From: Chlorokybus atmophyticus
Taxonomy: Eukaryota; Plantae; Mesostigma and Chlorokybus algae
DNA: 64,000 nucleotides
Direction: 5' to 3'
Assembly: GCA_009103225.1 (NCBI GenBank)
Contig: RHPI01001037.1
Span: 1,030,916-1,094,915 of the forward strand
The position numbers and the translations under genes were made by a program. Positions within the stretch are counted from its first letter, which is position 1. Every line of letters starts with the position of its first letter. Shown here piece by piece: positions 27,941-63,800 of the stretch. The notes under the pieces are model-generated. The model was not told the DNA's origin. It did no database searches and saw only the letters and a list, made by a program, of their open reading frames with translations.

Positions 27941-30900
27941 ATGGCTGGGGGAGGTGTTGTGACGAACGACACCACTGCCGCCATCATCAACCACAACCCC
28001 AACGATCCCAACAACAACCACATCACCGTCATCAGCGATGGCGGCGCGAACGAGGTGGACGTGCTGTCTCTCCCGCCGCCTTCGTCCTCCCGACACAGCA
28101 GCAGTCACTGGATGGATGCGGCCGTGAGGGCCGCAAAGACACACGCAGAGAGCTGCGGCCTCACCGACACCACGCGAACCAACACCAACACCAACACCAA
28201 CGCTACCGACACCTCCGATACCACAGCTCCTGATAACAGCGGCAGCCTGTGGGAGAAGCGCAAGCTGCTGCAGATCAGAACCGCCAATGCAGCACCGAGC
28301 CAGCCCGATGCAAACGAGCTGCAGGTAGTTGAAGGACGACCTGTGAACATGTGGATGTGTGTCCGAGTGACAGGCTGATGTTGATGTGTGTGTTGTACCA
28401 GGTTGAGACCCCTGTTGTGTCGGAGTCACGTGGTGTTGTTACAGCAGCCACGGCGGTGGCAGCGGCAGAGCGCACGTTGTCTTCGGGTGGTGGTGCGGGT
28501 CCGAGCGTAGCCAAGGCGTTTCTCGCGCGGCGTATGGGGATGGGATCTGCTCTAAAGCCTCCCGCGCGCCTCTCACTCACGCACAACACCGCGCCTACGA
28601 CCGCCGCCACTGCCGCTGCTGTGGGCAATGCCAACAGTCAGAACCACCACGGTGGCCACAATCACCACAAACACGCAAGTGCAGCACCATCCATCAGCTC
28701 GCTCGCAGCATTGCTGGAGTCACCTGTGCTGATGCCATCACACGAGGTGAGTGTTGCAACATTGTTGTTGCAACGTATACACCCACACACGCGCACGCAC
28801 GCGCGCACACATGCACATGCACACACACACACGCTGGCACACACACACATAACGACCCACGCACACGCAGCTTTACGCTGGCATGTGCTTTGCACAGGCG
28901 GAGCCATCGCCCACCACGGGCACATTCTCCCTGCCCTTGGGAGTGATTACACACACACACATAAAGAAGAAGTCGTCCTCATCGAAGCTCGACTCTACCC
29001 TCGCCGTGCGCAAGACCATCGCGAAGGCCATGCTCGCAAAGTCTTCCGTGCCAGCGAGGATGTCACCGTTGTCGCTGCCTGTGAGTTGTTGTTGATGTTG
29101 TTGTTGTTGCAAGTGCTGCAAGGGACTTGCACATGCTGATGTTGGTATGTTTGTGTGCTCACAGGAGAAGGCGGCAGTTGTTACGGCCACGGATGTGATC
29201 GCAGACGACGGGTACAATTGGCGCAAGTACGGGCAGAAGCACGTGAAGGGCACCGCCACGCCACGAAGCTACTACAAGTGCACGCACCCGTCCTGCCCCG
29301 TCAAAAAGAAGGCAAGCAATTGCAGACACACTATAGACAACATTACCAAAACCACCAACCACCACCACCACCACCACCAACAAGAGAAGAACATGCACTT
29401 ACACAGGTGGAGAGGTCGATGGCCGGGATAGTGTTGGGTTGCACATACAAGGGTTCGCACCTGCACGCCCCACCTAAGCATCGCCAGAAGCCCGCCGAGG
29501 GTGTCAATAAAAACAACAACAGCGCTGCGGGCGACACGTCGTCGAGTGTGTCCACGCAGGGGGGGGACGACGTGAGCGAGGCTTCCGGCGACACCCTGCG
29601 AGAGGACGTCGAGGAGGAGCAGGAGGAGGAGGTGGTTGTGCCTGAAAACAACAGCAACATCCCCAACGTTGAGGAGGAGTGCGTCACCACGCCGGCGGGA
29701 TGGCGCGCCCTCGTGAGCCAGGTGAAGGCTGAGGCAGATCACACAACTGCTAACGCCGCGCACGTTGCATCCAGCATGATGGCTGTCGTCATCGACCATG
29801 ACAGCGAGTTGCCCTCCCCGCTGAACAACTTCCACCCCGACATGATGATGTTCGGCCTGTCGTCCACCCCGACGGGACTGACCCCGCCGCCGATGGGGGC
29901 GGCGTGGACACCCACACTGGAGTTCGCCTTCAGCCCCGACGCACTCAGCGCCCTGTACAAAATAGGCCAGTTCGAGGCGTTCTTGGAGTCACCTCGACCC
30001 ATGCAAACAATCAATCACAACCACAACCACTTCAGCACTGCCGACAACATGCACGCGCAGCAGCACAGCACGGGTCAGCCTCTGAGGGTCAAGATTGCCG
30101 AGGGCGGGGCGCCTATTGTTATTCATCCACCCGCCCAGAGCAGCCGCGTCAACATCTTGCACGACGAGTTCCCGCCCGTCACGCCGCAGAAGCTGCACGA
30201 ACCCTACACGAACACGCCCTTCAGACCGATCATCGCGATGCAGCGGTCGTCCAGCACGGAGATCGATGTGGTAGTGGAGGGACCACCTCCAGCAAAGAAA
30301 AGGTCTGGTTGTAGAGAAACAACTCTTGCATGACGCACTTTCCTGTAGCAATAACACACACATGTGCGCGTGCACACGCACAACTAACACGCTCATTGAC
30401 ACGCACACCTGCACACACCTGCACGCACGCGTACATATACGTGTGATATATGTAGCAGGCGAAGCAGTGACATATCGAGTGCGAGCCTTGAGCAGCAGCT
30501 TCATCGGCCGCACACGGGTCAGTCCTCGTCATCCACGGCGACAGCGGCGGTGGTGGCGGCGGCTGCCAATGCTGCCGCGAGTGCTGCTGCAGCTGCTGCC
30601 GCTGCCGCAGCAGCAGCTAGCGCCTCTCAACAGGCGCCTGGCTCGGGCACGGGTGGCGCACGTGAGCCGCGTCTTATCCTTCGCACCAACACGGAGGTGG
30701 AGGTCCTGGACGACGGGTACCGGTGGCGCAAGTACGGTCAGAAGATGGTGAAGGGCAACCCATTCCCGCGGAGCTACTACAAGTGCACGGCGACGGGGTG
30801 TCCCGTCCGCAAGCACGTCGAGCGCGACTCCACGGACCCCAAGTTCCTCGTGTCCACGTACGAGGGAGCGCACACGCACGGACCACCCGCACAGAGCAAC

Positions 30901-31555
30901 CCGAGGCCCATCACCGTGTCAGCCCCACCCCCCGCAACCACACTATCATCAGCCGTCCCACAGCCGAGCCACGTGCGCATACCGCACACGCCACCTCAGC
31001 ACGCTCAGCACAGGCCGCAGACCCTCACACCGGCCAGGCCATCACAAGCACAACAGCAGCAGCAGCAGCAGCAACAACAACAACAACAACAGCAGCAGCA
31101 GCAGCAGCAGTTACGACAACTTCAGCAGCAGCAGCGCGACGATGCCATGGAGCAACAACAGCAGCAGCAGCAGCATAGGTTCAGACCTGATGCCACCAGT
31201 GCAGGCGGCGCCACCGTTTCGACCAATGTTGCAGGATTGACGCCAGCCGTGTCATCACTGACTGAAAGGGGCAATGACCGAGACAAGGGCCCTGCTGCGT
31301 GTGACGGAAGCCTGCCGGCGTGTTTGAGGGTGAGCACAGCACATAGAATGTTGCACCAACACCACCTCACGTGGCAACGTTGCATCCCGACACTAACAGT
31401 GGACAACTTTACCGATGCAGGGCCCCACAGAGATTGTGAGTCCGATGGGCGGGATGGGTGCGTTTGGCATCGATTTCCAGTTGTCCCCGTCGGAGCCCTT
31501 CCTGCTGACCTCGCCGTCTGTGCTGTTGAGAAAGTTCAACTTCCGCCCGTTTTAG
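27941..31555 (+). CDS. WRKY: Group I WRKY transcription factor (two WRKYGQK domains, C2H2 fingers), multi-exon, poly-Q/poly-A tracts
   Basis: [33 protein letters not shown]|VERS...YKGSHLH and [39 protein letters not shown]...YEGAHTH. Start and last exon inferred. Confidence 0.93.
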
Positions 31556-32085
31556 GCGTTACAACGCATCCACACATATTGCAAGCAAGCACCCGCGCGT
31601 GTGCGTGGCCAGTCAGTCATGTCTGCGCACGCAAGTTGATACTGCTGTACTTTAAATGCAGCTTAGACGTGTAATGTAACTCGGTTATAGAGAGGGGAGC
31701 ACGCTAGTGCAGTGAAGGGTAACAACATAGAGTGTGGTAAGGTGTAACACGCGCAGTGCAAGGTGTACCGTATTGAGACGCGGGCCTTACCTTACACGGG
31801 GTTGGCAGTCCATGCCTACTTTTACAATAGTAGGCGAAGAGGCTACCTGGTCTAGGCAGAAGCGTCCATTGATAATGCAAACTCTCTGGGGATGATAATC
31901 CCCAAGTGTCTGTGAACTGTCGTGACGCAATCTGTCGTGCCGACCCGAGTATAGTGCGCATACGACAGCAGTAAAACCAACCTGCACACACGTTCGACAC
32001 ACCACAACAAACAACACGCACGACATGCACAAAGCGCCAATCCAGCAGAGAACAGTACAAAAGGTCGTATAAGTCAGCATGATTG

Positions 32086-33490
32086 CTACAAGTCCGCCCT
32101 GTCTGCGTCATCCTCAGTCTCAACAGAATCGACATCAACATCAACATTATCACCGTCAATGTCCACATCCACATCGACATCAATACCGTCGTCGTCGTCC
32201 CTATACTCCGCTTTGGAGAAGTCCCCGCGCGCGCTTGGATCGGATGCGTGATCACTCGTATCGCCCCTATGCAGGATATCCTCAACCCCACCCTCACCCT
32301 CGCCTTTGCTGGCAAGCTGCAGCGGGTTCCACTCGAACCATTTTTGCAGCGAGTTGGTCATGCGGCCCCTGAACGCTGAGCGCTGGGCTTCGGTGGGGCC
32401 ATGGTAGCGCAGGACCAGCACGAGGGCGACGATGGTCACAAGCACCAGCGCGCGCGAGGCCAGCGAGGGCGGTGGGTCAACATTATTGGTGTCGCCACTC
32501 TCGGCGCTGGTAGCTGTTGTTGTTTTAGTGTCTTTGCTGCTTTTGCTGCCACCGTTGCTGCCGCCCTCGTAACCGATGATCGGCTGAAACGCCTCCAGTA
32601 TGGTCGCATCCTCCGCAAAGAGGTTGGGAAACATCCACAAGCGCTTGCCGAGAAGAGTCCAGATGGCCAGAAATACCAGCCAGCGCACTGCACAACAAGA
32701 CAACGAGGAAAACATTTATTTCAACATTGCCTACGTATGAACAAAACGCTGACAACAACAGCAGCAGCAACCACGGCCATAACAGCAGCTTGCCTGCGCA
32801 GAAGCCGACGATGAGGGTGAGAAAGGTGAGGCAGAAGTAGAGTACGCATAGCTTGGCCCATATGGGAAAGATGGGGAATAGGCAGCACCCGATGGTGACA
32901 GCTGGGAGGCCGGCCACGGCGAGGGCATGCCAGATGGAGTGCGGGCGGTTGTACGAGAACGCAAAGAAGCCTTCCTCGCAGAATGTCTGCACCGGGTATG
33001 GCACCAGCCTGTACGGCCACTTGGACAGCTTCTTCCTCCCGGGCTTGATCGCATGCGAGTAGCGATCGCAACGCACAATGAAGCCATTATCAATCAACCG
33101 CGTGCCCACCGCGTCCGCAGTCAATGGCGTTGCTACTGCAGGCTGCTGCTTGTTGTAACCCGCTGTTACCTTAGCCAACCTCTCAGGATGCTCCTGCGCA
33201 AACCTGTAGAAATCCTTCCCCCGAAAGTACTCCACGCTGCCACAGACAACACTTTCTCAACCACGTTACCATACACAAGTCCACACACACCCATATGCAA
33301 GCTTAATCAAGTAACCAATGTGACATGTGAATGGTGTATGTGGCAGCTTGCGTAATGCATGCATACCGGCTTTCTCGCAGCAGCCCCGTGCGGTATTCAA
33401 TGCCGTGGCGGCCACGTACATCCTCGCAGAAGCGCGTGAGGGCGTCCAGTTCAGCATCCGCCGCGCGGTCCTTGTCCTGGTTGTTGTCAA
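32086..33490 (-). CDS. SEC62: Translocation protein Sec62 (5' end unresolved)
   Basis: LRESR|VEYFRGKDF; FFAFSY..P; TIGCCLFPIFP...; LWMFPNLFAEDAT; two TM segments and an acidic tail. Confidence 0.85.
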
Positions 33491-36294: not shown

Positions 36295-39200
36295 TTAGCG
36301 CGTTTGTTTCCTAAACGGCTTCACATGCCGCTGCACTTGCTGCCGTTTCTTCTTACCCATGCCTTTCTGTTGCAGCGGCTTTGGTGCAAGAGCACCCGCA
36401 GAATCTGCGCGATCCATCTCATCATGCTCGACGCCCATTTTTTCTTCTCCGTCACCGGTCTCCAGCTCGTACTCCGCCTCAGACAACTTGCCCTTCTTCA
36501 TCTTCTTCAACAGCTTGTACTCGCGCTCCATCTGCTCCTCGTCGTTCTGCTGGCGCTTCTTCTTGCTCGAGCCCTTTGGCAGCTCCATGCGAGCCGGCTG
36601 CACTGAGCCTTTGTGCTGTTGGTTCTTGCTGTTGCCTTTGCTGTTAAATCCCTTACCGCTCGTGGTGGCTCCCGCGCCGCTGTTCACCCTTGCATCGCTG
36701 GCTGCAACAGATGCCTGAGCTTTCTTCAGATTCTGTTGCCTTTGTTTCTCCCGCAACTTGTCCCTGCAAGGACGCGGGGTTGATACAACCTATACCATGC
36801 AAGAGGGCAGCTGCTGTAATGCCTTGATGCAGTGGCTTACTTGTACTTGATAGTGGCTAGATCAATGTCGAATGGTATGAATGCGGACGTGTCCACTCGC
36901 CCGCGCTTCAACTCGGACATCGTGGGCAGCCGCAACAGCCCGAAGAGCATGGCCAGCGCTCCGAAGTTGAGGTCCTTGAACCTGCAGCACGTATATATGT
37001 TTGTGCTGCTCTATCAAATCTCTGTTTGTCTTGATTGCAGTCCTTGTATCTCTAACTGACAAGCATGAACACCGAGTGCTTGCTGCTGCCGAAAGACTCT
37101 GACCTGAAAATGTACTTGCAAACATGCTCCTTGTAACCGCGCACGAAGGACACAAAGGCGCGCAAACCTTTCTCCATGACTGCCCTGTCTGCTGCAGTAA
37201 TCGTACGAATCTGTGCGTACATTCTGAGTCAGCCTTGCGCAGCAACCACAGTGCCCAACAAGCATACCTGCGACAGCACTTCAGGCGCGTTATCATCCGG
37301 CGCCATCTCCGCCAGCCCCACTCCTCTCAGTCTCAGAAACTCCACGTACGCATCCTCCTTGGGCAGCAAGTACACCAACGCCGAGCCGGAGCGGCCCATG
37401 CGCGCAGTACGGCCCACGCGATGTATAAACGCGTCCGGGTCTTGCGGAGGGTCGAACTGGATGATCCAGTCGACTCCGGGGATGTCCAGCCCGCGCGCGG
37501 CCACATCCGTGCATAGCAGCACGCCAGCTGGCCACTCTGTGTACTCTGCCAAAGCCTTCTCTCGCTGAGACTGCGCGTGCATGAGTTGACATTAGTCTCA
37601 CAGTGTGATACGACATCCATGACACAACTGTGGCTGTAAGCTCACATGCCTGCTTCATCTTCCCATGCAAGGCTTGCATCTTCAAGGACTTCAACTCGCG
37701 AAGCTGCTGAAGGACCATGGCCCAGTAGTCCACGCTAGCACATGTGAGAAAGTACCTGATGCATGCAATGGTTTGGCAATGCATGCATGGCGATAAGACT
37801 TCAGTCCATGGGTAGGGAGCACTTACACAATACACTTTGCGCTGGAGTGGAATGTAAGGAACTGCACCAGTTGCGACATCTTGCGGTCCACTTCACAGCG
37901 CACAAACTGCGCGTCAGCACGCATTGAGCCACCTCTGCGCAGAATCCAAAACTCTGCTTTGAACTCGATAGGATGGTATACATAAAATTGCTATGCAACG
38001 CACGATCACCCACGTGCAGAGAAAGTGTCGAGGGCGTCTGCGAAGCGGTTGTGCTCTGCTTGCCAGAAAGCTGCGACTTGCCCTGCTGCTTCACCTCGAC
38101 GCGAACCGGGTTCCGCATCCCCGCTCTGGCCAGCTCTACCACCTGACATGATCGCATGCAAATGTCAGCCCAGCACAGCAGTAGCGTAAGGTTGGACAGC
38201 TGCACAGAAACTGCTGCTCATGACGATTGGCAAGAACAAACAAGCGGTGCTTCACAAACATGTCAGGCGCCTACAATGGTTGTGCAAGACACAAGCCATC
38301 ATTGTTTCACATGCGTATATGCAAGATGGAATGCATGATTAGTGCTGTTTCTCACCGCGCTGGTCTGTGTTGCAGAAAACAGCCCGGTCCGCCGCTGCTT
38401 GGGCAGGCGTGCTAAGATAGATGACAGCTGTTGCCTAAACCCCATGTCCAACAATCGATCCGCCTCATCCAACACAAGGACCTGCAGCCAGCATCCCAAC
38501 CGCTCATCCCTCAATTCAAGTGTCAACCACGTGTCACAAACTACTTACATCAAGCTCCTTCACATCCATGGCAGCAGAGCGGGTCAGCACGTCATCGAGC
38601 CGTCCCGGCGTGCCAACGAGGATATTGGCCCCATTAGACTGGAAGCGTGCCACGTCCGCGGCGACCTCCGTGCCACCGACAAGCAGCATCGCACGCAGAT
38701 TTGGGCGCTCTGTAAGAAAAAGCTGCAGGACAGCAAAAATCTGCAAAGCGAGCTCGCGCGTGGGTGAGATGATCATCGCTCCAACCTGCGAGTGACAATT
38801 GGATGTGTAGAGTGTGAGCACGTTTGCACTGGCACGTGTATGAATGTTGGACGGATGACAGCGCAACCGCAATCACCTGATATTTGCGCAGCGCGTGTTC
38901 TCGCCTCGATAACAGCTCGACAACGGGCACAATGAATGCAAGGGTCTTGCCTGAACCCGTGACGGCATCGACAGCAACGTCCTTATTGCTCATAAATAAA
39001 GGTATCGTCGCTGCCTGGCATTCAATACAACTAGTGACATGCATGTGTATGGACTGCAACTCTGCCAACCAATCCACTGCGATCTTGATCTTGTTTGGGT
39101 TTTGGCTTGAATTGGAGAGCAATCCGCATGCTGCAACAGGCGAGACAGCCAACGGCATAGCTTTCCCTTTTCCTATCAACAGCACACTACTCGCAAACTG

Positions 39201-39557
39201 GTTGGCATGAGTGATTCTGACTATTGTACAGGAACGCGACAGACCGCCAAAGGCAGGGACTTCAACAGTGCAACAAAGCGCTGCTTCAACAATTAAGTAT
39301 GCGCAGTTGCAATGCAGCTTGTTGCATGCAAGCACTCAGCAAAAAGAATTGCCAAGAACGAGCATATACTGCAGGAATGATGGAAAGGACAAGAGAAAAC
39401 TTAAAATCAGATCAGTCCATCATAGACCAACCTGCACAGGCGTGAGATGTGTGAAACCCTGCTGCCTCAAAGCAGCCAGCATCTCCTCCGACAAGGGCGG
39501 CTGCAGCTCCTCAAACGTCCTATCCGTCGTCGCCGCAGACTCCATACCTGAACCCAT
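36295..39557 (-). CDS. DDX55: DEAD-box RNA helicase, DDX55/Spb4/RH18 type
   Basis: TPVQ|[23 protein letters not shown]; SPTRELA; GTPGRL; [13 protein letters not shown]; RRTGLFSAT; [11 protein letters not shown]; [11 protein letters not shown]; [10 protein letters not shown]; [16 protein letters not shown]; Lys-rich C-terminus. Confidence 0.93.
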
Positions 39558-41001: not shown

Positions 41002-42770
<1,769 letters not shown>

Positions 42771-47592: not shown

Positions 47593-48365
47593 ATGCCCCA
47601 CCCCACCCACACCCATCACTCCACACGCTCCCTCCTGCTGCTGACGCTAACAACAACAGTACTCTTGCTATCCACCCACCCAACACCATGTCTCGCCGCA
47701 TCTTACTACACCCTCGACGGCCGCGGCAACAACCTCAAGAACCCAGACTGGGGGTACGCATGTTGTTGATAAGTAGGTTGCCATGCATCGGACATGCGTG
47801 ATTGATGGAGGTATGTGTGTGTGTGTGTGTGTGTGCAATTGTAGGAGTGCGCCGAGAGAGTATCTGAGGAGGCAGGCGCCGGTCGCGGCGGTGGATAGCA
47901 GCAATGGGCGGCCGAGTGCGCGTGCTGTCAGCCTCGCCACGCAGCTACCCATCAACCAGACGTGAGTAGTGTTTCTTGTTGTGGGTGGTGGTCTTGTGGT
48001 GGTGGCGGTGGTTATGGTTGCTCGATGTGCTCGTGCGCGTGCAGGGCGCCGAGGTCAGAAAGGAACACGACGGACATGGTGACATACATGGTGAGCGCAC
48101 GCGCATACCCACGCACGTCATTTCATTGAATCACGCTCAAACGATGATCACACCCTCAATGAGAAGGGGGTCAACATCAGTCACTCTCCTATATATCGCC
48201 TTCTTCCCCTCACCTCAGGGCCAGTTTTTTCACCTCGACATCGACATGACAGTCCCCAACCGGTAAGCACACCACTTACGCCATCCCACTACACTACACC
48301 ACACCAGACCCACCACCCTCCCACACCCAATTACCAACCAACCCAACATCCTACTACTCCCCCCC

Positions 48366-48409
<44 letters not shown>

Positions 48410-48757
48410 NNNNNNNNNNNNNNNNNNNNNNNNNNNNNNNNNNNNNNNNNNNNNNNNNNNNNNNNNNNNNNNNNNNNNNNNNNNNNNNNNNNNNNNNNNN
48501 NNNNNNNNNNNNNNNNNNNNNNNNNNNNNNNNNNNNNNNNNNNNNNNNNNNNNNNNNNNNNNNNNNNNNNNNNNNNNNNNNNNNNNNNNNNNNNNNNNNN
48601 NNNNNNNNNNNNNNNNNNNNNNNNNNNNNNNNNNNNNNNNNNNNNNNNNNNNNNNNNNNNNNNNNNNNNNNNNNNNNNNNNNNNNNNNNNNNNNNNNNNN
48701 NNNNNNNNNNNNNNNNNNNNNNNNNNNNNNNNNNNNNNNNNNNNNNNNNNNNNNNNN

Positions 48758-48832
<75 letters not shown>

Positions 48833-49868
48833 TCTCTCTCTCCCTCCGTGCAGCTCCGACCCCCTCCGTATCGCCGTCCCCCTCTGCGACCCCGTCTTCG
48901 ACCGCGCCTGCGCCGGAGGAACAAGCCTCACGTTTAATCGGGCGATGTGGAACGTCAGTGCGGGGCAGACTGGTGAGGAGAGGGGATGAGAGGTTTTGAT
49001 TTGATTGTTGGTTTGAGTGACAGAGTGAAAGTGAGGGGAGGGAGAGTGGGAGAGTGGGGGTGGTGGGTGGGTGGGGTGTGGGTGTGGGTGTGGGGAGAGG
49101 GAGGGGGAAGCCACTCACCCACTCACCCGCACTCACCCTCTCCGTGTGCGCGGGTGAGTGGCTGAGCTGTTGAACTGTTGAGCGTTTGAGTCAGCACTAG
49201 TTGGTGGAGTGGTATGGCAGGCAGAATTCGACCACTTACTCACTAACAGAGAGTGTACCGCCTCATTCACGAACACCCAATCAACTCTGTGTGTTGCAGG
49301 CCTCCCCCGCCAGCCTCTCAACTTCGTCACCTCCTACCTCGACGCCGGCCAGCTCTACGGCAGCAACTCCACCTCGTCCTCCTCCTCGTCCTCATCCATG
49401 GGGATGCTTCGGTCGCGGCGGAACGGGCGGCTGTCCACCGACGGGGACGACATGCTGCCGTGGGACTGGGACGGGACGGTTATGATGAATATCGGGCGGG
49501 AGACGGTGAGAGTTGGGGTTGTTGGTGTGGTTGTTGTGGTCGTTGATGTGCGTAGGTAGTATTGTTGTTGTTGTTGTCATCCGTGTTGTAACATCATTAT
49601 GTGCGCAGAACATGAGGCTTGCTGGTGATCCGAGGATGAACATGGCGCCGGGACTGCTGGCGATAGCGGTAAGGGTGTTTGTATCCCTTTGCTTGTTATG
49701 GTTGGTTAGGGCCACCTTTGGTGTGATTGTGTGTCTCTGTCACTGCAGACACTGTTTGTGCGGGAGCACAATCGCCTCGCTGCCGCTTTTGCCGCCGCCC
49801 ATCCCTCGTGGCAAGATGAGGACATCTTCCAAGCCGCTCGCAAGTGGAACACGGCCCAGCTACAAGTA

Positions 49869-49901
<33 letters not shown>

Positions 49902-52852
49902 GCGCGCGCCTTCACAACTCCCGCCCTCCCCGCCCTCCCTCCCTAACAAACACGCACAGATGCATGCNNNNNNNNNNNCCCCCACCCACCCACACTCTCA
50001 CCCACACTCCCTTCCCCCCCCCTCCCCCAGTCCATCTTCTTCACGGAGTACCTCCCCTCCCTCGGCCTCCCCCTCCCCTCCTTCTCCTCCTACGACCCCT
50101 CGACCAGCGCGGGCATGGACGCCCTGTTCTCCGCCGCCGCCGCGAGAGCGATCGCGCACTCCGCCGTGCCGGACGTCGTGGCGAGGGTGGGAGGAGACTG
50201 GGGGGAGAGCGAGGACGGACACCTGATGCTGAGTGACGTGAGTGGGGGTGGGGGAGGTGGGAGGAACAACGTGATGTTGACTTTGGGGCTGTGTGTATCT
50301 GGCTGGCTGTAGGCGATGTTTAGGCCACAGGTGGCGTTGGCGGAAGGGATCGATACGTTGATACGGGGCATGGTGTGGCATGTTCAGATGAAGGTGGGGT
50401 GGGTTTTGAGACTCTTTCTGTGGGACTTGACTCTGTGTGGGACTTGATTCGCACAAGTGGATTGATGGTGAGACAAACTCGAGCTTCTTCTTCTTTGGCA
50501 GGTGGACTTGCAGTTTGAAACCGCGTTGAGGAGTTACCTTTTTGGTAATCCGGGGGCGGGAGGGTCCGACCTGGCGGCGCGGGACATACAGCGAGGACGA
50601 GACTTCGGCTTACCGGACTACAACAAGTAAGGCAAAGACTGTGACGAGTCCTCACACAACAACAACAACGCACGCAAGCACGCACGCACGCACGCACGTG
50701 ACAGTGACCATCATTGCAACTCTATTTTAATTTCATCATTGCAGGTGTCGGAAGTACCTTGGGCTTGCGCCGGTAGCCACCTTTGCCAACATTTCTTCAG
50801 ACCCGTGGGTTCAGGTACGCGGTGATACGATCTTGCTTACATGCATAAGAGTGGAGTCGCTTACAAGTGTTGTCCTCCGTTAGGGGGTGTTGTCTGCGGC
50901 GTACAACGGGAGCGTGAACAACATAGACGTGTATGTGGGCGCCCTGGCGGAGGATCACGTCCCCGGAACCAGTATGGGACCCCTCCTACGTGCTTCACTC
51001 CTCGACCAGTACAGACGCCTCAGAGATGCTGACCGCTTCTACTTTGAGAATACAAACAATGGGTACTTACACGCATACAGAAACACATGTACAGACGTGT
51101 CTGCAGGCATACACGCCCATGCACGCGCTTACATGCACACACACACTCACGCACTCCTGCGCACGCATGCCCTCACACACACACGCGTGCACCCAGCAAG
51201 CAAACATCCATCCACGCACACCCCCACCCCCACCCACTCTCTCCCCCCCAAACAGTCTCTTCACCCCCGGCGAGATCCTGCAGCTCCGTGCCACCCGTCT
51301 CCGCGACGTGATCCTGCGCAACTCCGGCATCTCCTCCCTCCCCCGTTCCGTCTGGATCAAGCAGGACTCCTCTTTGGCGAGGTGCGCCGACCCCACCGTC
51401 GACACGGGGTCCGTGACCGACGCGCTGGATAGTGAGGTGGAGACGGGGGTGGATGTCGAGAATGGGATGCACATGACCGTCGTGCAGGGGGGACTGTACA
51501 ATGTGTCGTGGATCGTGGAGGTAAGAGGGGTGGGTGTGGGTGTGGGCGTGCGTGCGTGCGTGTATGTGTTGCTCGCGACGATGCCATCATGGGCATGACA
51601 ATGTTGTTATGTTCTTCTTGCAGGGCAGCAACATGCGGTTCGTCATCAGCGCCCGCACCACGGGTTGGGTCGGCTTCGGACTCGCCGGCCCCTTAGGCGG
51701 CATGGTCCAGGTAAGTCAACCACCTCTCTTGAGACAACCCAACACCCCCACCCCCTCACCTTACCCACCCACCCACCCATCCTCCCCTCCCTCTCCAGGC
51801 CGACATCATCATGGGTTGCGTCCTCCCCTCCGGCCTCGTCTCCCTCGACGACTACTGGTCCGTCGGCTACCACGCTCCCGTCCTCGACACCTCCCTCCCC
51901 TCCGGCACCTCCGACGTCACGCTCTTGTGGGGCAAAGAGGTTGACGGCGTGACAACTATAGCTTTCTCACGGGCGTTGCGCACCCCGGATGCGGCATACG
52001 ATCACGCGCTGGATGGGGCGATCGACTCGGAGCCGACGGCGTTCCTGTGGGCGATGGGGGTGGGGGATGAGATGGGGGAGGGGCTGGACGGGTACCATGG
52101 TGGGGTCAACCGAGGAACGGGAGAGGTGAGTGTGTGTTGCAACCAGCAAGGAGCAGACCTCATGTCAGGCATGCAAGCATGACACGTCACATGCATGCAC
52201 GTATTAGCATGCACTTTGATGCATAAGTGCGCATTGACGTATGCATGCATACACATATGCACACGCACACGCAAGCGCACATATGCACACGCATGCAGCT
52301 CACACTCGCACGCATACAGGCGCGTGCACCCACGCACGCACCCACGCATGCAAGTACATGCGCATGCTCGTCCGCACACGCGCACACGCACTCACACTCG
52401 CACTCGCACACGCAAATGCACACGCACATCCCCTGACCCACACAGGTGGTGTTGACGGCTGTCCCGCCCGTTCTGCCCGCCTCGTCTTCTTCCTCAGTCA
52501 AACTGCAAGTGAGTTCGACGACGTCCACCACACCAACCGCACAGGCAGCCAACAGCGGGAAGGTCACATTCACCAGCGGCTACATTCTCCAGTGGGAAAT
52601 GTAAGTCAACTCAACACTGTACAATTAACTCCTCGAAACCATCCCAACATGCGTGTACGCTCACACATGTACGCACGGGTGGGTCATCTTGGGCCAGTGT
52701 GACTGGTAACAAAGTAGTAGTGGGACGACTTTCTTCTACTCATGCCCCAGTCAATCGACTTCAACACGCACGCACGTGTTGGATCATTTATTCCTTCAGC
52801 CAACATGCAACACACACAACCCATCGACACAACCTGACACACACACACACCA

Positions 52853-52944
<92 letters not shown>

Positions 52945-55900
52945 ACCNTCACCCTCACCTCTCCCGGTTCCGGTTGGGTCGCCGTGGGTTTCAACAGCGT
53001 TGGCGGCGACCGCATGGTCGGGGCGGACGTGTACGTGGGTTACGTGGATGGGGACACGGGTAAGGGTGTGGTGGACGATCGTTACGCAACCGACTTCGCC
53101 ATGCCGGATGTGGATGTTCATCAGGATGTGTTGAGTTATGCGGTGGATACGGATGGGGAAGGGCATACCAGGGTGATGTTCACGAGGTTGCTGGATACGG
53201 GGGATGCGGTGGGGGATCGGGTCATTACGCTTGGGAGCAACCAGGTGAGGATGCAAGCAAAGGCAAATGTGCGTGTGTACAGGGATGCACAGACAAGCGA
53301 GAGTGCGTGCCCGTTTTGTTGAGTCGTGCGCGTGCATGTGTGCCTGCATGTGCCAGCCTGCGTGCGCGCGTGTGTACGCACGAATGCGCATGTGGTCATG
53401 CATGCATGCGTGTGTGCGTACGCGCGTGCCTGCCCGTGCGCAGAACACATGGACTCCATATTGTGTGTGTTGCGCTTCGACTGGTTGACACCATCAACCC
53501 TGCATGATGGCACGCAGGTGATATACGCGTGGCATCCCGACTCGATGGTCTTCCAATACCACGGCGCATCGCACCGAGGCTACGCCACAGTGGACTTCAG
53601 CATCACACTCACTAATGTTGTAAGTGCCTTACTCATCATGCCACGGCGCAAAGACCGTGACTGAGACCAACACATGTGTACGTGTGTGCGTGTGTGTCAC
53701 AGACGGTGCATCACGGGGGCGTGGACATGTTGGCCGTCCACGGCGGTATCATGTTGGTTTCGTGGGCCGTCCTTGCCGTGGTGGGCGTATCAATCGCACG
53801 TTGGGGTCGCGGTTGGCGTCACTGGATGAAAGCACACAAGTACTTGCAAAGCGCCATCACGCTTGTCGCGCTCGCTGGCGAGATCGTTGGTTCGGCATAC
53901 ACGCACGCTCCCTTCACGTCGTCTCACGCCATCACAAGCATCATCGTGGTGGTGTTGACGATCCCTCAGGACTTCACCGGCGTGTTGGCTTACCGACACC
54001 GCAACAATTCAAACTACCGACGCCTCCACCGCGCCACGGGTTACTTCCTCATGGGCATCGCTTTCTTGCAGATATGGAGTGGGCTTTCCACCCTCGGCGT
54101 GACGACACGTCTCGTAGGCGTGTACTTAGCGTGGGCTTTGTCTCTTGTGGGAGCCTTTCAGTTCAGTGGGGACCTTCTCGCCAAACAGGAGATACAAGAC
54201 ATGTTTGTGCGGTTCATTGGCACGAACGATCATCAGCTTGAAGAGGAGAGCAAGCGCAACTTCAACTTGAACAACAGCGGGTACTATAGTGGGTATGGTG
54301 ATGACCATATCCAACAGCAGCAGCCTCAGCACTACATGTATAGCGACGACGACATGCTCAACAACGGGGATATGAACGGCAATAGTGTCCACGACGTGCG
54401 CTCCAACGCGTCGAGTTACTCGGAGCGTCTCGCCTCACCGTCGCGTGGGAGCAGCGGGACGGGAACGCCAATGTCCTCTACATCACCCAACATGCTGCTC
54501 AGTCCATCCGGCGGCGCAATGACCTTCTCTCCCTCGCACCAACAACAACAACAGCCACCGCAGAGACATCTATTAGACTACTCACTCCCGACGACTCCCA
54601 CGCAACAATCGCCGATGGCGCAAGCGAGAGACAGGCTTCGCGCCATTGCAACTGAGGCTCGCAATGTGCTCGCAGGCGGCGTGCACGACGTGAACGGCTC
54701 GGACACAACAACATTGTTGTCGATTCCGCCACGCTTAGCGTTGGGATCTCTCTCTGTGTTGAATGCAGCGCAGCCGTCACCGCGCTCGCCATCCGTGCTG
54801 CCAACACTCTTTCCACTCGACAACGACAACCACACCGCCACCACCGACAACAACAACAACACAGAGAGTGATGCCGATCGCAAGCGTGCTTTGCGTGTGA
54901 CTGAAGGCGAAGCTCTCCTCGCTGCGATGGTGAACCCGGCTAAGAATGCCGCGAAGCCGCGCGACGCTGCCTTTGCGGAGAAGTGGTCAGCTGCGGTCTC
55001 TATAGTCAACAGGAGCCAGTCCTTAGTAAAACGCAAACCCGCCAACGATGAGAAGAGTATGTCAGGCGATACAAAGGCTTCCGCCAACACAAGTGGAGAC
55101 AAGTTTGCTGCTGACATCAGCAGCAAAGCGACCAGTGCTGATAGCACCAAGAGGCGTGTACGCAAGTCTATCGCCGATGAGAAGAAGCCTGGTGAAGACA
55201 AGGACAGAGATAGAGACAGAGACAGGGACAAAGACAACAATAGCGGCAGCAACAGCAACAGCCGCAGCAACAGTCCGAAGGGTACCGAGCCCAACTTGGA
55301 CAAGGCGCCCTCTCAGCACGCATCCGCATTGGACGAAAGGTCCAACACAACAACGACGGATGGCAGCAAGTCCACCTCGAATAGTTCAGCCCCATCCAAG
55401 AGTCGCATGCCGAGGGCGAGCGAGATGTTCTCCGGCGTGTTCTCCATCGCGGACGCGCTGCAGGACAAGCTCGGCGGCGGCCGCAAGAGCACCAACACCA
55501 ACAATAGCACCAATAGCAATGAGAAAGAGTCCTCGACCTTTAAGCCTGCATCAGGTCAGCCCGCAAGAAAGCCAAGGCAAAGCGAGATGTTGAGCAGTTC
55601 GGAAAGAGAGAAAGAGGCAGCTTTGGCTTCTGGAGGGAAGAGGCCCGGGAGAAAGAGCGAGCACTTCACTTCTCAGGGAGGGAGCAAAGAAGGAGGAGGA
55701 GGTGGGGGAGGAGGAGGTGGTGGGGGTTCAGGGGAGAAGGATGGCTCTGGAGAGAAGGCGTCCACGTTGGATACGGCGCCGGAGGACAGGATGGCGAGGA
55801 CACGAGCGAAGAGCGGCAAGCTCGACAGCGTGATCAGCAACCTCGCGCAGGTCTGTTTGACAGGACTTCACTTGCTTGTGTGCGTGTGTGTGGCAAGAGA

Positions 55901-57555
55901 GAAGGTTTTACTGACTTCTGTTGTCCCTTTTCCTTTCTTGCAGATGACGCCCGCAGCAGTGCGCAAGCAACTAGCAAAGGGAAAGAAGCTGACGGTAAGG
56001 AAGAAAGTACTACTGGCTCGTGAACAACCGACATGCTGTGCATACTTTATGCGTGCCTTGTAACACACAAGCCATGTTTCAGATCATCAAGGGCTTCATT
56101 GTCGACATCACCAACTTCATGAGCGTACATCCCGGCGGCCAGAGCGTCCTTAAGGCCGAAGTGGGCCAGAACGCCACATCGGTACGTGGACTTCGTGCGT
56201 CGTGTTGACTCTGAGACGGCGTCACACAACTAATGCGCGATCCCATGCTCAGAGCTTTGCGGATGCGCACGGAGACGACCCGGCCGTCTGGTCCAAGGTG
56301 ACGTCCCTCATGGTCGGGAAGCTCGTCGAGGAGGGCGCCAGCGGGACGAGCACGAGCGGATCCACAGGACAGCTGCTCAGGACAAACACGCACAAGATGT
56401 CCGATCCCAATGGTATGCATGGTGTTAGTGATTGTCACTGGCCATGACACAAATTGAACCACTGATGTGTATGTGTGTGTGTGTGTGTGCGTGCGCGCAC
56501 GTGTGTATGCATGTGCGCGTGTGTGTATTCACGCGTGCGCGTGTGTGTTTACCGCAGGGCCACCAGGCTTGTTGGACCCAAGTGAGTGGCGGGCGTTCGT
56601 TCTCAAGAAGAAAACCGATCTCCAGCAAGGCGTGCGTCGTTTCCGCTTCGCTCTCGCTGTGCGGCCGCCCGAGAAGGCTGGCGTCGCGCTGGTTGGTATC
56701 CCAATCGGTTCTTACGTGATCGCTCGCGCGAGTATTGGCAACAGCGGGGACAACTACATCTCACGCTCCTACACGCCCGTGCGCTCGGGACCCGAGGACC
56801 TCAGCTTCGACCTCGTCGTGAGACTCGTGCCCAACGGCAACGGCACCATGACCAAGCACCTGTTCACGCTCCAGGCGGGAGACACGCTGCAGTTCAAGGG
56901 ACCCATTGCAAGCGGGTTCACGTACCAACCCAACAAGTACAAGCACATAGCCATGATTGCCGCCGGCACGGGGGTCACACCCATGTATCAGGTACTTGTT
57001 GTGGACTTTTTTTTGCTCACATGCAAGCTTGTGTTGTGCTTGCATCTGACTTGTATCTGATGTGACCAGATGATCACGGCAATACTGCCCAATGCTGAGG
57101 ACAAGACGAAGCTATCGCTTGTATTGGCGAGCAAGTGCGAAGATGACATTGTGTTGGGTAAAGAGGTGGACGCGTATGCTGCAAAGTACCCCAACTTCAC
57201 GGTGAGAGCCTTCATGAGCCTTGGCAGCACTCTTGCTTACGTATACATCTGCCATGTTGTTTCGATGACACTCTAACCATACTCTTACCCCCTGTTTCAG
57301 GTCTGGCACAACTTGAAGAACCCGACAAGTTCGTCCTGGGCTGGCGGTCGCGGCACGTTGACAAAGGAGTCCTTGACCGAGCATGTGCCTGCTCCCGCAA
57401 AGGGCTCCATCATGGTGTTGGTGTGCGGTTCGCCCGACTTTAATGTGGCCATGGCCGGCGTGGGAGTGGCTGGCGCCGCGAAGAATGGCCCTGCATTTAA
57501 AGAGAGCATGCTCGGAAAGATAGGGCATTCAGCGGAGATGGTGTTTATCTTCTAG
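47593..57555 (+). CDS. Multidomain redox protein: signal peptide, animal-type (DUOX-like) heme peroxidase, DOMON x2, cytochrome b561, disordered linker, cytochrome b5, NADH-cytochrome b5 reductase
   Basis: YTLDGRGNNLKNPDWG; GQFFHLDID; IAVPLCDPVFD; PRQPLNFVTSYLDAGQLYG; GDPRMN; LFVREHNRLA; DLAARDIQRGRDFGLPDYN; IDVYVGALAE; DQYRRLRDADRFYFEN; two GWV(G/A)xGF..GGM/RM..ADI/V DOMON domains; b561 with four His; HPGG; RSYTP; AAGTGVTPM; CGSP. Inter-domain splice phases are compatible except across the poly-C run. Confidence 0.88.
48410..48757. other. Assembly gap (N run) within a (CT)n microsatellite, intronic
   Basis: N run flanked by CT repeats. Exons on both sides join in phase (PNR|SDPLRI). Confidence 0.95.
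52854..52944. other. ~91-nt poly-C run, probable sequencing/assembly artefact
   Basis: Homopolymer next to an n. Similar poly-G+n runs occur at ~2605 and ~15344. Confidence 0.75.
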
Positions 57556-58191
57556 CCCCATTCTTGTAGACATTTTTTAAGCCAGTAAGGATGTGTTGAT
57601 AGGCATATATAAGCTTGTGAGGTAGAGTGGTATGCAAGCGATATTCTGTCAATGAGCACACGCTGTGCTCTTAACTACTTTTTGAGGCCACACCGCAGGT
57701 GTTGCTGGTAGTTACTGCCTCACTTAAGTGTGGATACATGTACACTGCACATACATATGTGCGTGTGACACCCATGACATGCAGTTACAATGACTGACGC
57801 GTATGCTGTATAGCACAACCGATACCTTGGCACTGACAAGGGTCTAGGCAGGGGAAAATTCACGAAGGCACAATGCCACGAAGCCAGCACGTGCGCACCT
57901 ACTAATGCACACACAAAAGCACACGCACAGTGCACAAACCCCACACATACACGGCACGCCCACATGCGGCACGCCCATGCACTGTGCCAAGCTTGTGTGC
58001 AAAACCTCAAGCATCACACCAACAGAAGGTTACCGAAACCTCTTACCAAAAATGGAACAGCTGCACTACTGCCAGTACACACGTAAACTAACTAGCTACC
58101 ACGCCCGCCAAAAACCAAACTCAAAGAGAACACCTCTGCACCATCGCGGCTTGCAAGTCACTCACTAACCAATAAGGGATTCGGGGATTGT

Positions 58192-60846: not shown

Positions 60847-63800
60847 ATGCTGGGACAGCAGGCGCAGCGGATCCGGCGCGTACCCGGCATGGTGAAGCGC
60901 TATGGCCAGCGCAGCCGCCAGCGCCGCAGGGAGAAGAGGGAGGAGGCGGCGGCAGCAGCCGCCGCTTCGGCGCCGGAGCAGGAGAGCTTCGCCGATAGCC
61001 CAGGTTGGCCTTTTCAATACACCGTTGTGCAGTGAAACTAGCTTGAGATAGACTAATTCAGCACAAGCCTCGTATGAATGTCGTGTATTTAGCCAATGCG
61101 TGGCACACCGTTGTAGCACAGGCGGCCTGAAGTTTGCATGTTGAGTCATAGCTATGCCAACTCGGTCTACGTCAGTCAGTTCAAGATTCGTGGGTTATCG
61201 CATGCTGAGTTCCATTCAATCAGTACAAGTTGGTCACTTGATTTGTGATACGTGGTTGTTTACTGGTCCAAACTGTGAAGCTGTGTACATGTCACTGGCC
61301 TCCTGTTTCGCAGACGCACTTGCTGTGTAATTGTGCTGTGCATGCAATTTAGAAAAGCTTGGAGGTACACAATCCCAGGCAATGGGTCAGTCACAGCATC
61401 ATAGTCACTGTGGTTCGCTACCAAACATACGGATTGTCATTTTTATTAGATAACAGCAAGTTGCATGCTTTGCCCCTTCCTCATATGTGTAGTCTTCCAA
61501 TGAAGAAAGTCAATCATGCAGTCGTGTGCAATCCAAACTCATCAAATGTCAAGCTTGTTCTACTTCAAAGGCAGAAAATTTGTCATCAATGTGAACACGT
61601 CCCAGGCGACAGTCAAGACAGCATGAAACCACTGCGTCATCGCCATAAGTATGACCCGAGGCGCTGGGCGATAAAACACTACACAGAGTCCGGGTCCGGA
61701 CCACCGGAAGGGTACCTGCTGATATGGGTGGGAATGTTTAAGCGCTGGCAGAAGCGCTTCTGCGTTGCAGACCGTCCAGGCGTGCTCATCTACTACAAGC
61801 ACAAGTCCAAGAAGGGCACCTGCTGGACCATTAACCTGCAGGTATGACCGCTTCCAGTGCCTGCGCTCCGTGTGGACAAGCGCACTCTGTGCTGGACATG
61901 CATTGGGTTCATCTTTGCAGGAGGCCACAGTGAGCGATTCCGATGCAAATGAGCGACAGTTTGTTATCAACAATGGCGCCACGACTTACTTTTTTAGGAG
62001 TTTCTCAAAAGAGCAAAGAGAAGTAAGTAAGCAGCTGCATAGGGTGCTTATGCGTTAGGTCCACATTTTTGACATGTGGATTCACAACTGTTTGTTTGCT
62101 GCTTTTGTGTAGCCTTGGATTGCGTGTCTTCGGGAGTCTATCAGGACCTTTGCAGACGTCATCGTGAAAGCGAAAGAGGTCAAAGCCAATGCACTGTGGC
62201 CGCGTCATGCAGACGGCACCCTGAGCGAGGTGGGTTCCATGATTCAATAAGATATCCCCCCCCCCCCCGGGGCATTGTACAAAAACAAATACAACAGATG
62301 GCTAGAACAAATGAACAAGGGGACAACTGGCCATATATTAGCTTATGACCGCAGACTGATGAGGAGGAAGAAGACTTTCAGAAAGAGCTGCAGGCACGCT
62401 GCGAGGCACACAAAAAGGTGTTCGAGCCAGACATGCGAGGTACCTAGCTGCAAGCAGGGATGGAAGATTTGCATGCACTCTTTTCGTTTATGCCTCAGTG
62501 TGGTGCGCCATCGACTTTGTTGTACAGCTTTTCTGGGGGAGATCAGGCGGCTGCAGCAATCGCTAGCAACAATGGTCGGGGCACTGGATATGGGAGAGGG
62601 CGCTGAGACGGAATTGCAAGAGCCGGTGTCCCCGGCAACGAGTGTGGGCGTAGAGTCGGGCACTCCTTCCCGTCCTTCTTCTCCTTTGCATCCTGCGTCA
62701 CCATTGGCATCTCCTAAGCAACCAATATCACCACTTGGGTCAGAAGCAAAGTCTGACAGTCAGCAGGTACTTGGCTCATCACTTGTTTGCATGCCGATAA
62801 CCACAGTTGTTTTGCCGGAAGGGTACGGATAACAACTACACACATACATGGGCGGAAGTGAGCACTGGCTGTATAGCCTTTGCAGTCCGTTGTAACTGCG
62901 AAGTGTGCGTGTTGTTCACCAAAGCGCAGCAAGCACACAGTTAGCGATATCCATACCATAAATTTACATACACGCGCATGCATTGGGTAACAATTTTACA
63001 GTATCAACGCATGGCAGATGTGTGCACCATGTGTGTTAAAAGCCCCAGGGCAGTCTGTACCTGCAAGCATGCATGTGCTGTTAGGTTTGGGTGCTGGTGT
63101 GTAGATGCTGACGCCTTTTTTCTTTCAGACCCCCAAGTTGGGAACTCCCATGCGAGCCACACCCCAGGGCGGCACGCCGAGCAAAGGAAAGTTCACATTG
63201 TTCTCGGTGCTGCGTGACAGCAATGACTCTCCTCGCACTGTGCAAAGCAAGCTCGCCGCTGCTGCGGTTGACGCAGTTGCAGAGCAGCCCTCACAGATGC
63301 ATACAGCAGAAAGCATGGGCTCCATCGCAGTCAGAAGGAAAGGCTGGTTGATGGATGCTTGGAAGCGTGTGCAGGAGGCTTATGATGATCAGATTCGCTC
63401 TGAGGTCCGGAGATGCTTGCTGGTTGAGACGGAGAACGCCGCGCTGCAGAAACGCATACGCTCACTGGAACAACAAAATGCAGCATTGCTGAGTTTGCAC
63501 CCCAACTCGCACGGAAGCACAAGGTCCATGCAACCGATCCCTACTGTGGAGGTGCCTCCAGCGGAAGATGAGGATGCCGACAGCAATGTCTCGAGCGACG
63601 AGGCTAGCAGCGAAGCCACCAACGGCTCAGAAGAGTATTTTGAAGCATTGGAAGCCCTGAACCAGTATGAGTACTATGTTAAAACCACCCCTGCTGACCG
63701 CCAGGTAGGAAAAACCGCTGCTGTGGCAGTATTGAAAAGCTGTTGGGTCAGTTTAGCTGACATGTTTTGTGTGCTCTCAGCTTGCAACAAGTGCATCGTC

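Follow-up and report, generated by a model that had tools for sequence, protein, structure and literature searches.

Can one polypeptide take electrons from NAD(P)H in the cytosol, carry them across a membrane and deliver them to a peroxidase-type haem on the other side? This question is raised by a locus on contig RHPI01001037.1 of the alga Chlorokybus atmophyticus (assembly GCA_009103225.1), which we analysed within a stretch of 64,000 nucleotides (nt; positions 1,030,916 to 1,094,915, hereafter the window). An initial annotation, made without database searches, had proposed that a peroxidase, two DOMON domains, a cytochrome b561, a cytochrome b5 and a b5 reductase are joined here in a single chain, a DUOX analogue built from different parts. 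We found one probable gene whose product would comprise, in this order, a signal peptide, an animal-type haem peroxidase domain (the head), two DOMON domains (DOMON1 and DOMON2), a b561 core, a linker, a Cyt-b5 domain and an FAD/NAD module. We consider it fairly probable that this type-I-like membrane protein is a self-contained wire that moves electrons outward. Its topology, electron path, donor and product are inferred from the parts, their order, their ligands and the number of helices. The coordinates of all features are collected in Table 1.

The + strand between 47.3 and 57.8 kb of the window translates into many short protein-like open segments and one segment of 800 codons. Exons were joined by hand from this stop-to-stop translation, and Pfam was run on the stop-free pieces. 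The resulting model has 26 exons and 6192 nt, in which 2063 codons without an internal stop precede the TAG at 57553-57555. Each of the 25 introns has GT-AG borders and ends in a pyrimidine-rich stretch, and all phases are compatible. Exon 14 (51256-51520) holds the last peroxidase helices together with the first strand of DOMON1, the DOMON2 exon has no possible start codon, and the DOMON2/b561, b561/b5 and b5/reductase junctions are all in phase. The initial annotation had expected an open reading frame of roughly 2000 amino acids, with the peroxidase-to-DOMON1 junction inside one exon and phase-compatible junctions downstream, and the model agrees with it on each of these points. The locus is probably one gene for one chain, a reading on which the phases, the canonical splice sites, the stop-free coding linker and the collinear six-domain homologues described below agree.

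The linker shares one exon with the b561 core. The 800-codon frame covers both and, since the 93-nt GT-AG intron that follows is also open in frame, extends into the first b5 exon. The linker part comprises 517 stop-free codons, compared with 13 and 20 stops in the other two frames. Openness of this length has a composition-based probability of ~1e-8 and was reached in 0 of 2000 Markov-1 simulations, and the G+C content at third codon positions (GC3) is 0.67 versus 0.52-0.54 at positions 1 and 2. This low-complexity linker is coding sequence, in which a Pfam scan detected neither an EF-hand nor any other Pfam family.

Three places inside the locus have uncertain sequence. The gap of 348 N in intron 4 is flanked by (CT)20 on the left and (CT)44 on the right, and because (CT)n stands on both sides, the unread bases belong to the interior of a single microsatellite. 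Across the gap, exon 4 is joined to exon 5 in phase 2+1 (GQFFHLDIDMTVPN-R-SDPLRIAVPLCDP). An exon hidden in this gap was ruled out, as the spacing from the distal motif GQFFHLD to IAVPLCDP is that of solved peroxidases and relatives (13 residues here and in PDB entry 8s6c, 11 in 6erc and 18 in the homologue P0002). Across the 11-N gap in intron 8, exon 8 ends in ...AQLQ and exon 9 opens with SIFFTEYLPSLG, which matches AQMQAVFFYEYVPSLG of P0002 with nothing missing. No coding sequence appears to be missing at either gap. The third place, absent from the initial annotation, is in exon 18, where TRF reports a run of 91 C (52854-52944) that is followed by a single N at 52948. Each of the three single Ns of the window (2620, 15362 and 52948) lies at most three bases from the 3' end of a G or C homopolymer; these Ns behave as small assembly gaps and not as single ambiguous bases. 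The reads are cut at the 91-C run and, since the single Ns follow homopolymers and the reads break here, the length of the run is not trustworthy. Among canonical acceptors, only the AG at 52798/99 leaves the conserved GWVAVGF strand intact. Another acceptor that would skip the run was ruled out, as there is no AG between 52799 and 52995. The frame entered at 52798/99 reads a CA-rich His/Thr stretch and then ~31 Pro, together an insertion of ~45 residues in the first hairpin loop of DOMON2. The stretch 52801-52950 is the least certain of the model; DOMON2 itself is not in doubt.

The An_peroxidase family (PF03098) matches five exon pieces that are colinear over profile positions 123-496 (E 5e-8 to 5e-17). 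Four of the five matches reach 32-62 bits at a cut-off of 25 bits, which places the head in this family. Both DOMON matches exceed the Pfam cut-off of 32.7 bits, and Cyt-b5, FAD_binding_6 (60.3 bits) and NAD_binding_1 (29.2 bits) are also above their cut-offs; NAD_binding_6 reaches E 0.096 at best on the pieces. The b5 domain has both haem ligands, H1720 in HPGG and H1743 in DAHG, and the FNR-type module behind it has RSYTP in FAD_binding_6 and GTGVTP and CGSP in NAD_binding_1. The pair is a b5/b5-reductase fusion in which all of the motifs named in advance were located.

The membrane segment gives a weak Cytochrom_B561/DUF4079 match (17.3 bits for Cytochrom_B561, below the Pfam cut-off of 23). 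Its structure was predicted with AlphaFold2 (AF2) from an alignment of 54 homologous cores, and the model has five helices (mean pLDDT 89.6). The best folds in the PDB are Arabidopsis cytochrome b561 (4o7g and 4o6y, TM 0.62-0.66) and human Dcytb (5zle). In Swiss-Prot, they are eight Arabidopsis CYBDOMs (DOMON-b561 proteins) and FRRS1 (ferric-chelate reductase 1), with E values down to 5e-5. PF03188 is matched by 48 of the 55 homologous b561 cores. The core contains four His (H984, H1016, H1046 and H1080), and a CYBDOM-type b561 fold with five helices and two His pairs is confirmed in the predicted structure.

Both DOMON domains have the Met/His pair of CYBDOM-type DOMONs: M626 (51702-51704) and H728 (52096-52098) in DOMON1, M861 (53014-53016) and H952 (53560-53562) in DOMON2. 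These columns are kept in five family members. The Met-His spacing is ~90-100 residues here and 84 residues in the DOMON of HYP1, a plant CYBDOM (PMC10784544). All eight haem ligands of the DOMON domains and the b561 core are kept in five algal-type relatives, and the b561 and b5 His are kept across 43-46 members of the fusion family. The Met and His ligands that had been noticed in both DOMONs and the four His of the b561 are thus present and conserved.

The N-terminus has the features of a signal peptide (Arg12, a hydrophobic core of 15 residues and small residues), after which the mature protein would start with YxxDGxGNNxxxPxWG. The two predicted cytosolic loops of the b561 core are rich in Arg and Lys (ARWGRGWRHWMKAHK and YRHRNNSNYRRLHRA), and the predicted outer loops are nearly without them (one Arg, in the short loop between transmembrane helices 4 and 5). 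Given the signal peptide, the odd number of transmembrane helices and the basic loops on the cytosolic side, the protein is predicted to be N-out/C-in, with the peroxidase and DOMON domains outside and the b5 and b5 reductase in the cytosol. The prediction coincides with the earlier proposal that the two ends lie on opposite sides of the membrane. HYP1 likewise has five helices, an apoplastic Met/His DOMON haem and two His pairs, and moves electrons outward through the two His-pair haems and the DOMON haem (PMC10784544).

To find relatives, we used the b561 core in an exhaustive HMMER search of 1.8 billion proteins (E <= 0.001). Only 92 proteins matched, and the two best matches are long (P0001 and P0002). 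P0002 is a protein of 1610 amino acids from Cymbomonas tetramitiformis (KAK3239360.1) with all six Pfam families in the same order. It is collinear with our model, with an identity of 34% over the peroxidase and DOMON1, 36% over DOMON2 and b561, and 28% over b5 and reductase. The head of P0002 scores 394 bits with An_peroxidase and matches DUOX1 structures at E 1e-53, and its DOMON also matches the cytochrome family of cellobiose dehydrogenase (CDH; PF16010). Shorter builds were found as well. P0001 (1136 amino acids, peroxidase-DOMON-DOMON-b561) ends after the b561 and comes from an intronless contig, probably a transcript assembly. P0005 (DOMON-DOMON-b561-b5) comes from an intronless 2.5-kb contig, probably a transcript, and P0062 (peroxidase-DOMON-b561-b5) from an intronless contig of a marine metatranscriptome. 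The domain junctions that these three contigs bridge in relatives favour a single chain here.

A search with a Gigaspora protein revealed the six-family build, as read from precomputed domain sets, in ~30 Glomeromycotina proteins of at least 10 genera, among them Gigaspora, Dentiscutata, Cetraspora, Scutellospora, Racocetra, Acaulospora, Entrophospora, Rhizophagus and Paraglomus. Examples are P0096 of Gigaspora margarita, P0106 of Rhizophagus irregularis and P0125 of Paraglomus occultum, the first of which is collinear with the model at 20-29% identity. All arbuscular mycorrhizal genera encountered contain several copies, and these proteins are annotated only as 'heme peroxidase' or hypothetical. 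The same six-domain build is present in the EukProt protist protein g11801.t1 (P0134, 2061 amino acids). The Glomeromycotina homologues have one DOMON, compared with two here, and the linker between b561 and b5 is ~40-115 amino acids there versus ~550 amino acids here. Judged by the presence of all six families in order, the window protein appears to belong to an unnamed fusion family (peroxidase-DOMON-b561-b5-b5 reductase) in public databases. The initial annotation had left room for unstudied homologues, and such proteins are indeed present in one prasinophyte, one EukProt protist and every one of the Glomeromycotina sampled. Full-text searches, which miss most subscription journals, returned no paper on the six-domain architecture.

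In a quick tree of the DOMON and b561 regions, the window protein groups with P0001, P0002, P0005 and P0007 (99% SH-aLRT). The peroxidase-fused proteins all lie to the same side of one branch, whose support is only 35% SH-aLRT, and a single origin is neither shown nor excluded by this tree. A word-indexed search with residues 560-1300 of P0002 returned only six proteins, perhaps because Pro-rich words crowded the candidate list, which is a guess; its b561 part alone returned only itself. The protein of the locus itself did not turn up in either of the protein libraries searched. Some other proteins have unusual builds. A second Cymbomonas protein (P0016, KAK3282883.1) has an Ion_trans match between the b5 and FAD domains, and the EukProt protein P0006 has the domains of the fusion family in scrambled order; either may be a gene-model error. 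The second-best match to the Cymbomonas DOMON region is P0094 (1216 amino acids), from the metagenome-assembled genome of a Thermoplasmata archaeon, with at least six tandem domains that resemble DOMON or the CDH cytochrome.

What the head might do can be approached from its conserved residues. The catalytic columns were read through P0002, which is alignable to the solved peroxidases 8s6c and 6erc. In the head of the window protein, three of these columns are conserved, namely the distal Gln at Q110, the catalytic Arg at R240 and the proximal His at H333 (in ...RAIAHSAV, aligned to RYGHSEV). In the algal relatives P0002 and P0062, the set is complete (Gln/His/Arg/His). In the Glomeromycotina heads (P0095-P0133), the distal His is replaced by Phe or Tyr (rarely by Ser, Ala or Lys) and the catalytic Arg is lost, features that also set these homologues apart from the window protein. 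The proximal His is nearly invariant among the members of the family, Glomeromycotina included. Since the fungi have lost the distal His and Arg and kept the proximal His, what the family conserves is probably a haem held by this His at the end of the chain, and not the acid-base machinery of compound I. This pattern suggests a chemistry other than classical peroxidation.

If the parts work together as their order implies, cytosolic NAD(P)H would reduce the FAD of the b5-reductase-type module, which would hand single electrons to the tethered cytochrome b5. The b5 would dock at the strongly basic cytosolic face of the five-helix b561 core and pass the electrons to the inner b561 haem (H1016/H1080), from which they would reach the outer one (H984/H1046). 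From there, they would move to the Met/His haem of DOMON2, then to that of DOMON1, and end at a five-coordinate, peroxidase-type haem in the head that would be bound through H333. Such a wire would contain six haems and one FAD. Where an ordinary CYBDOM depends on diffusible ascorbate, this protein would have an NAD(P)H dehydrogenase of its own, and it would end outside in an additional catalytic haem domain. The tethered b5 and b5 reductase suggest that these modules, instead of ascorbate, are the donor. NADH is likelier to be used than NADPH because, in the LVLASKCEDDIVLGKE segment and at its C-terminus (...VFIF), the module is similar to NADH-type b5 reductases and nitrate reductase. The terminal chemistry would most likely be a reduction at the head haem. 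Either H2O2 would be reduced to water by electrons supplied within the chain by the DOMON cytochromes, which would play the part that cytochrome c plays for cytochrome c peroxidase, or O2 would be reduced to superoxide or H2O2. Classical peroxidation of halides or phenols is a less likely output because a Leu occupies the distal-His position here and the fungi have lost both His and Arg.

Several observations weigh against an outward wire that ends at the head. The distal-His column is occupied by L114 and the His stands one position earlier, at H113 (GQFFHLD, where others have GQFFSHD or GQFLDHD); the Gln-x-x-x-His plus Arg arrangement is not found in the head, and a local register shift is possible. 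The position of the ester-forming Asp is H113, that of the Glu is Met (RMNM), and one residue is inserted before H333. Given the displaced distal His, the absent ester-forming Asp and Glu and this insertion, the head may have little catalytic power, or its haem binding may depart from expectation. Many non-animal members of the haem peroxidase superfamily likewise lack the ester-forming Asp and Glu. The displaced distal His, which the initial annotation had not noticed, and the missing ester-forming residues weaken the earlier designation of the head as a peroxidase; the head is probably not a classical peroxidase. With potentials of ~+50 to +150 mV, the haems of DOMON and b561 domains are ill suited to reduce O2 or the ferric haem of a peroxidase. 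At the level of the gene, the frame of exon 18 through the 91-C run and the N is unsure, as is the length of that run. RNA runs were sought for 52000-57600 and none is listed. The sole run that contains the locus (X1) gave eight short contigs; those at introns or exon borders are unspliced, which identifies the run as low-coverage genomic DNA, uninformative on splicing.

The doubts about the head lead to a serious rival reading, although one that we regard as unlikely, in which the single chain is still an outward wire and its DOMON haems are the outlet. As in plant CYBDOMs and the cytochromes of cellobiose dehydrogenase, these haems would reduce extracellular Fe(III) or Cu(II) or else a partner enzyme, and the head would serve as a structural or regulatory part or as a sensor. 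In HYP1, ferric and cupric substrates receive their electrons from the DOMON haem (PMC10784544). The match of the P0002 DOMON to PF16010 points in the same direction, as do the displaced distal His here and, in ~30 fungal homologues, its replacement by Phe or Tyr together with the loss of the Arg. Mammalian DUOX, with its catalytically degenerate peroxidase-homology domain, provides the likeness for an accessory head. However, a proximal His that is invariant in nearly all members argues that the head still binds haem. In addition, Q110 and R240 are kept here, the complete catalytic set is kept in P0002 and P0062, and the head has been retained across a very wide phylogenetic span. The inner end of the chain is open to a different reading, to which we assign a low probability: the b561 core would still be fed by ascorbate, and the tethered b5 and b5 reductase would re-reduce monodehydroascorbate nearby or serve a cytosolic partner. 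All characterised b561 and CYBDOM proteins use ascorbate (PMC10784544), the Lys and Arg kept around H1016 and H1080 on the cytosolic face could bind it, and a linker of 550 amino acids is a loose tether. Yet b5 and b5 reductase are fused behind b561 in distant lineages with linkers down to ~40-115 amino acids, which argues for direct functional coupling, and variants with b5 only (P0005 and P0062) also occur.

That the locus is two or more genes seems very improbable. A peroxidase-DOMON-DOMON-b561 gene with a long tail would here be followed by a b5-b5 reductase gene that starts at exon 21, which opens with an ATG at 55944 (MTPAAVRKQLAKGKKL...), the sole point within the gene structure that favours a split. 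It is also compatible with P0001, the relative that stops after the b561, and with the locus being held by a genomic run and no listed RNA run. However, intron 20 (55851-55943) is GT-AG, has a strong pyrimidine tract, keeps the phase and is open in frame, and the first stop of the upstream frame is at 56061, inside the intron after the first b5 exon. Because the b561 frame stays open until there, any independent upstream gene would run across the b5 exon. Moreover, b561, b5 and b5 reductase are together in one predicted protein in three lineages. We give hardly any credence to an assembly artefact, in which pieces of paralogues were joined at the N gaps or the C run, or to a decaying gene with a frame broken in the C run. 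The three uncertain places, the single Ns that always follow homopolymers and the reads cut at the C run speak for such an origin. The same (CT)n repeat on both sides of the 348-N gap speaks against it, as do exon phases that agree across all three places, a collinear homology with no segment duplicated or missing, and the absence of any in-frame stop in the 6192 nt.

Two designs are known by which electrons are exported across eukaryotic membranes. NOX, DUOX and FRO proteins use a ferric-reductase fold in which electrons pass from NADPH through FAD to two haems, and b561 and CYBDOM proteins pass electrons from ascorbate through two or three haems. If the outward wire holds true, it would be a third design, with a CYBDOM core, an NAD(P)H dehydrogenase inside and a peroxidase-type haem outside. 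It would offer a natural single-chain wire of six haems for the study of long-range electron transfer, and the logic of DUOX, a peroxidase head on a powered membrane core, would have arisen more than once. It would also direct attention to a multi-copy family of redox enzymes, so far unstudied, in arbuscular mycorrhizal fungi, for whose symbiosis the apoplastic chemistry of reactive oxygen species and iron matters. More tentatively, and with rather more doubt than confidence, we propose that the family is a convergent counterpart of DUOX and the first NAD(P)H-fuelled b561-type cytochrome, with FAD and six haems in a single chain that would power the reduction of O2 or H2O2 at a rebuilt peroxidase-type haem outside. 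It would be common to green algae and, in multiple copies, to all arbuscular mycorrhizal fungi, in which it could shape redox exchange at the symbiotic interface.

The surroundings of the locus were also inspected. A WRKY DNA-binding domain (30400-31671, + strand, Pfam E 2.4e-27) follows a poly-Ala/Ser stretch and indicates a transcription factor of the green-lineage type; this gene and the nearest homologues of the redox protein are in keeping with an alga of the green lineage. On the - strand, a JAB1/MPN metalloprotease gene similar to RPN11/CSN5 has at least two exons (41118-42191, Pfam JAB E 2.3e-27). Pieces of a Sec62 translocon subunit (32528-33256, - strand), a DEAD-box helicase (38637-39335, - strand) and a PH-domain protein (61353-61844, + strand) have no obvious tie to the redox gene. 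Between 7000 and 21000, the G+C content is 0.36-0.42 versus ~0.55 elsewhere in the window, and this region is possibly a repeat or mobile element. Strand asymmetry is strong at 16-21 kb (GC skew ~-0.3, AT skew up to +0.34).

Table 1. Features of the redox locus, in positions of the window
Feature	Position	Strand	Basis or remark
Whole coding region	47593-57555	+	26 exons, collinear with Cymbomonas P0002 over all domains
Predicted signal peptide, MPHPTHTHHSTRSLLLLTLTTTVLLLSTHPTPCLA/AS	47593-47700	+	Read from the sequence, heuristic
Animal-type haem peroxidase domain, exons 1-14	47701-51403	+	Pfam PF03098; alignment to PDB 8s6c/6erc via P0002
Assembly gap, 348 N, in the (CT)n microsatellite of intron 4	48410-48757	.	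Repeat on both flanks
Assembly gap, 11 N, in intron 8	49968-49978	.	Exon 8/9 join matches P0002
DOMON1	51461-52125	+	Pfam DOMON, 42.9 bits
DOMON2	52545-53619	+	Pfam DOMON, 56.6 bits
His/Thr-rich segment, 91-nt C run and single N, exon 18	52801-52950	+	TRF, (C)91
Five-helix CYBDOM-type cytochrome b561 core	53703-54194	+	AF2 model, fold matches, conserved His
Low-complexity linker, predicted cytosolic, ~550 amino acids, rich in Ser/Thr/Asn/Gly	54195-55850	+	Coding statistics
Cytochrome b5 domain, exons 21-23	55944-56351	+	Pfam Cyt-b5, 32.6 bits
b5-reductase-type flavin module, ends ...MVFIF	56572-57552	+	Pfam FAD_binding_6, NAD_binding_1

Among known systems, DUOX1/2 (PDB 6wxr and 7d3e) likewise have an N-terminal extracellular domain of the peroxidase family, a two-haem membrane core and a C-terminal dehydrogenase of the FNR superfamily. 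The PF03098 matches on the exon pieces correspond to the N-terminal peroxidase-homology domain of DUOX, and in both cases catalytic residues of the head are degenerate in many members. The cores differ, being a six-helix ferric-reductase domain in DUOX and a five-helix b561 in the window protein, which in addition has three extra cytochromes (two DOMON and one b5) and no EF-hands. No piece matches the ferric-reductase domain PF01794 in Pfam at E <= 0.1, and over all pieces Pfam gives FAD_binding_6 and NAD_binding_1 as the best dehydrogenase matches, with neither a dehydrogenase of the NOX type (FAD_binding_8/NAD_binding_6) nor EF-hands. Membership in DUOX/NOX was ruled out by these Pfam families and by the b561 fold of the membrane core. 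The description as a DUOX analogue is apt for the head, the two-haem core and the FNR-type dehydrogenase, and fails if it is taken to mean a DUOX.

The cytosolic half resembles Ncb5or/CYB5R4 and the C-terminal half of nitrate reductase, where a Cyt-b5 domain is also followed by FAD_binding_6 and NAD_binding_1 with RxYT, GxGxxP, CGxP and a C-terminal aromatic residue. Those are soluble enzymes whose electrons go to a molybdenum centre or to partners that are themselves soluble, whereas the pair here is located on the cytosolic tail of a membrane cytochrome. The cytochrome of cellobiose dehydrogenase shares the DOMON-like beta-sandwich, the Met/His b-haem and the role of a shuttle from a flavin to an external acceptor; in contrast, that enzyme is secreted and soluble, has its flavin on the same side and crosses no membrane. 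The plant CYBDOMs (HYP1/CRR; At5g47530 and At3g25290) and animal FRRS1/SDR2 share with the window protein the signal peptide, the Met/His DOMON and the five-helix b561 with two His pairs. They are 370-600 amino acids long, use free cytosolic ascorbate and are without peroxidase, b5 or flavin module. By its DOMON ligands and b561 fold, the window protein is of the CYBDOM kind, with three modules added to that plan: a second DOMON, a peroxidase head and a tethered NAD(P)H-FAD-b5 feeder.

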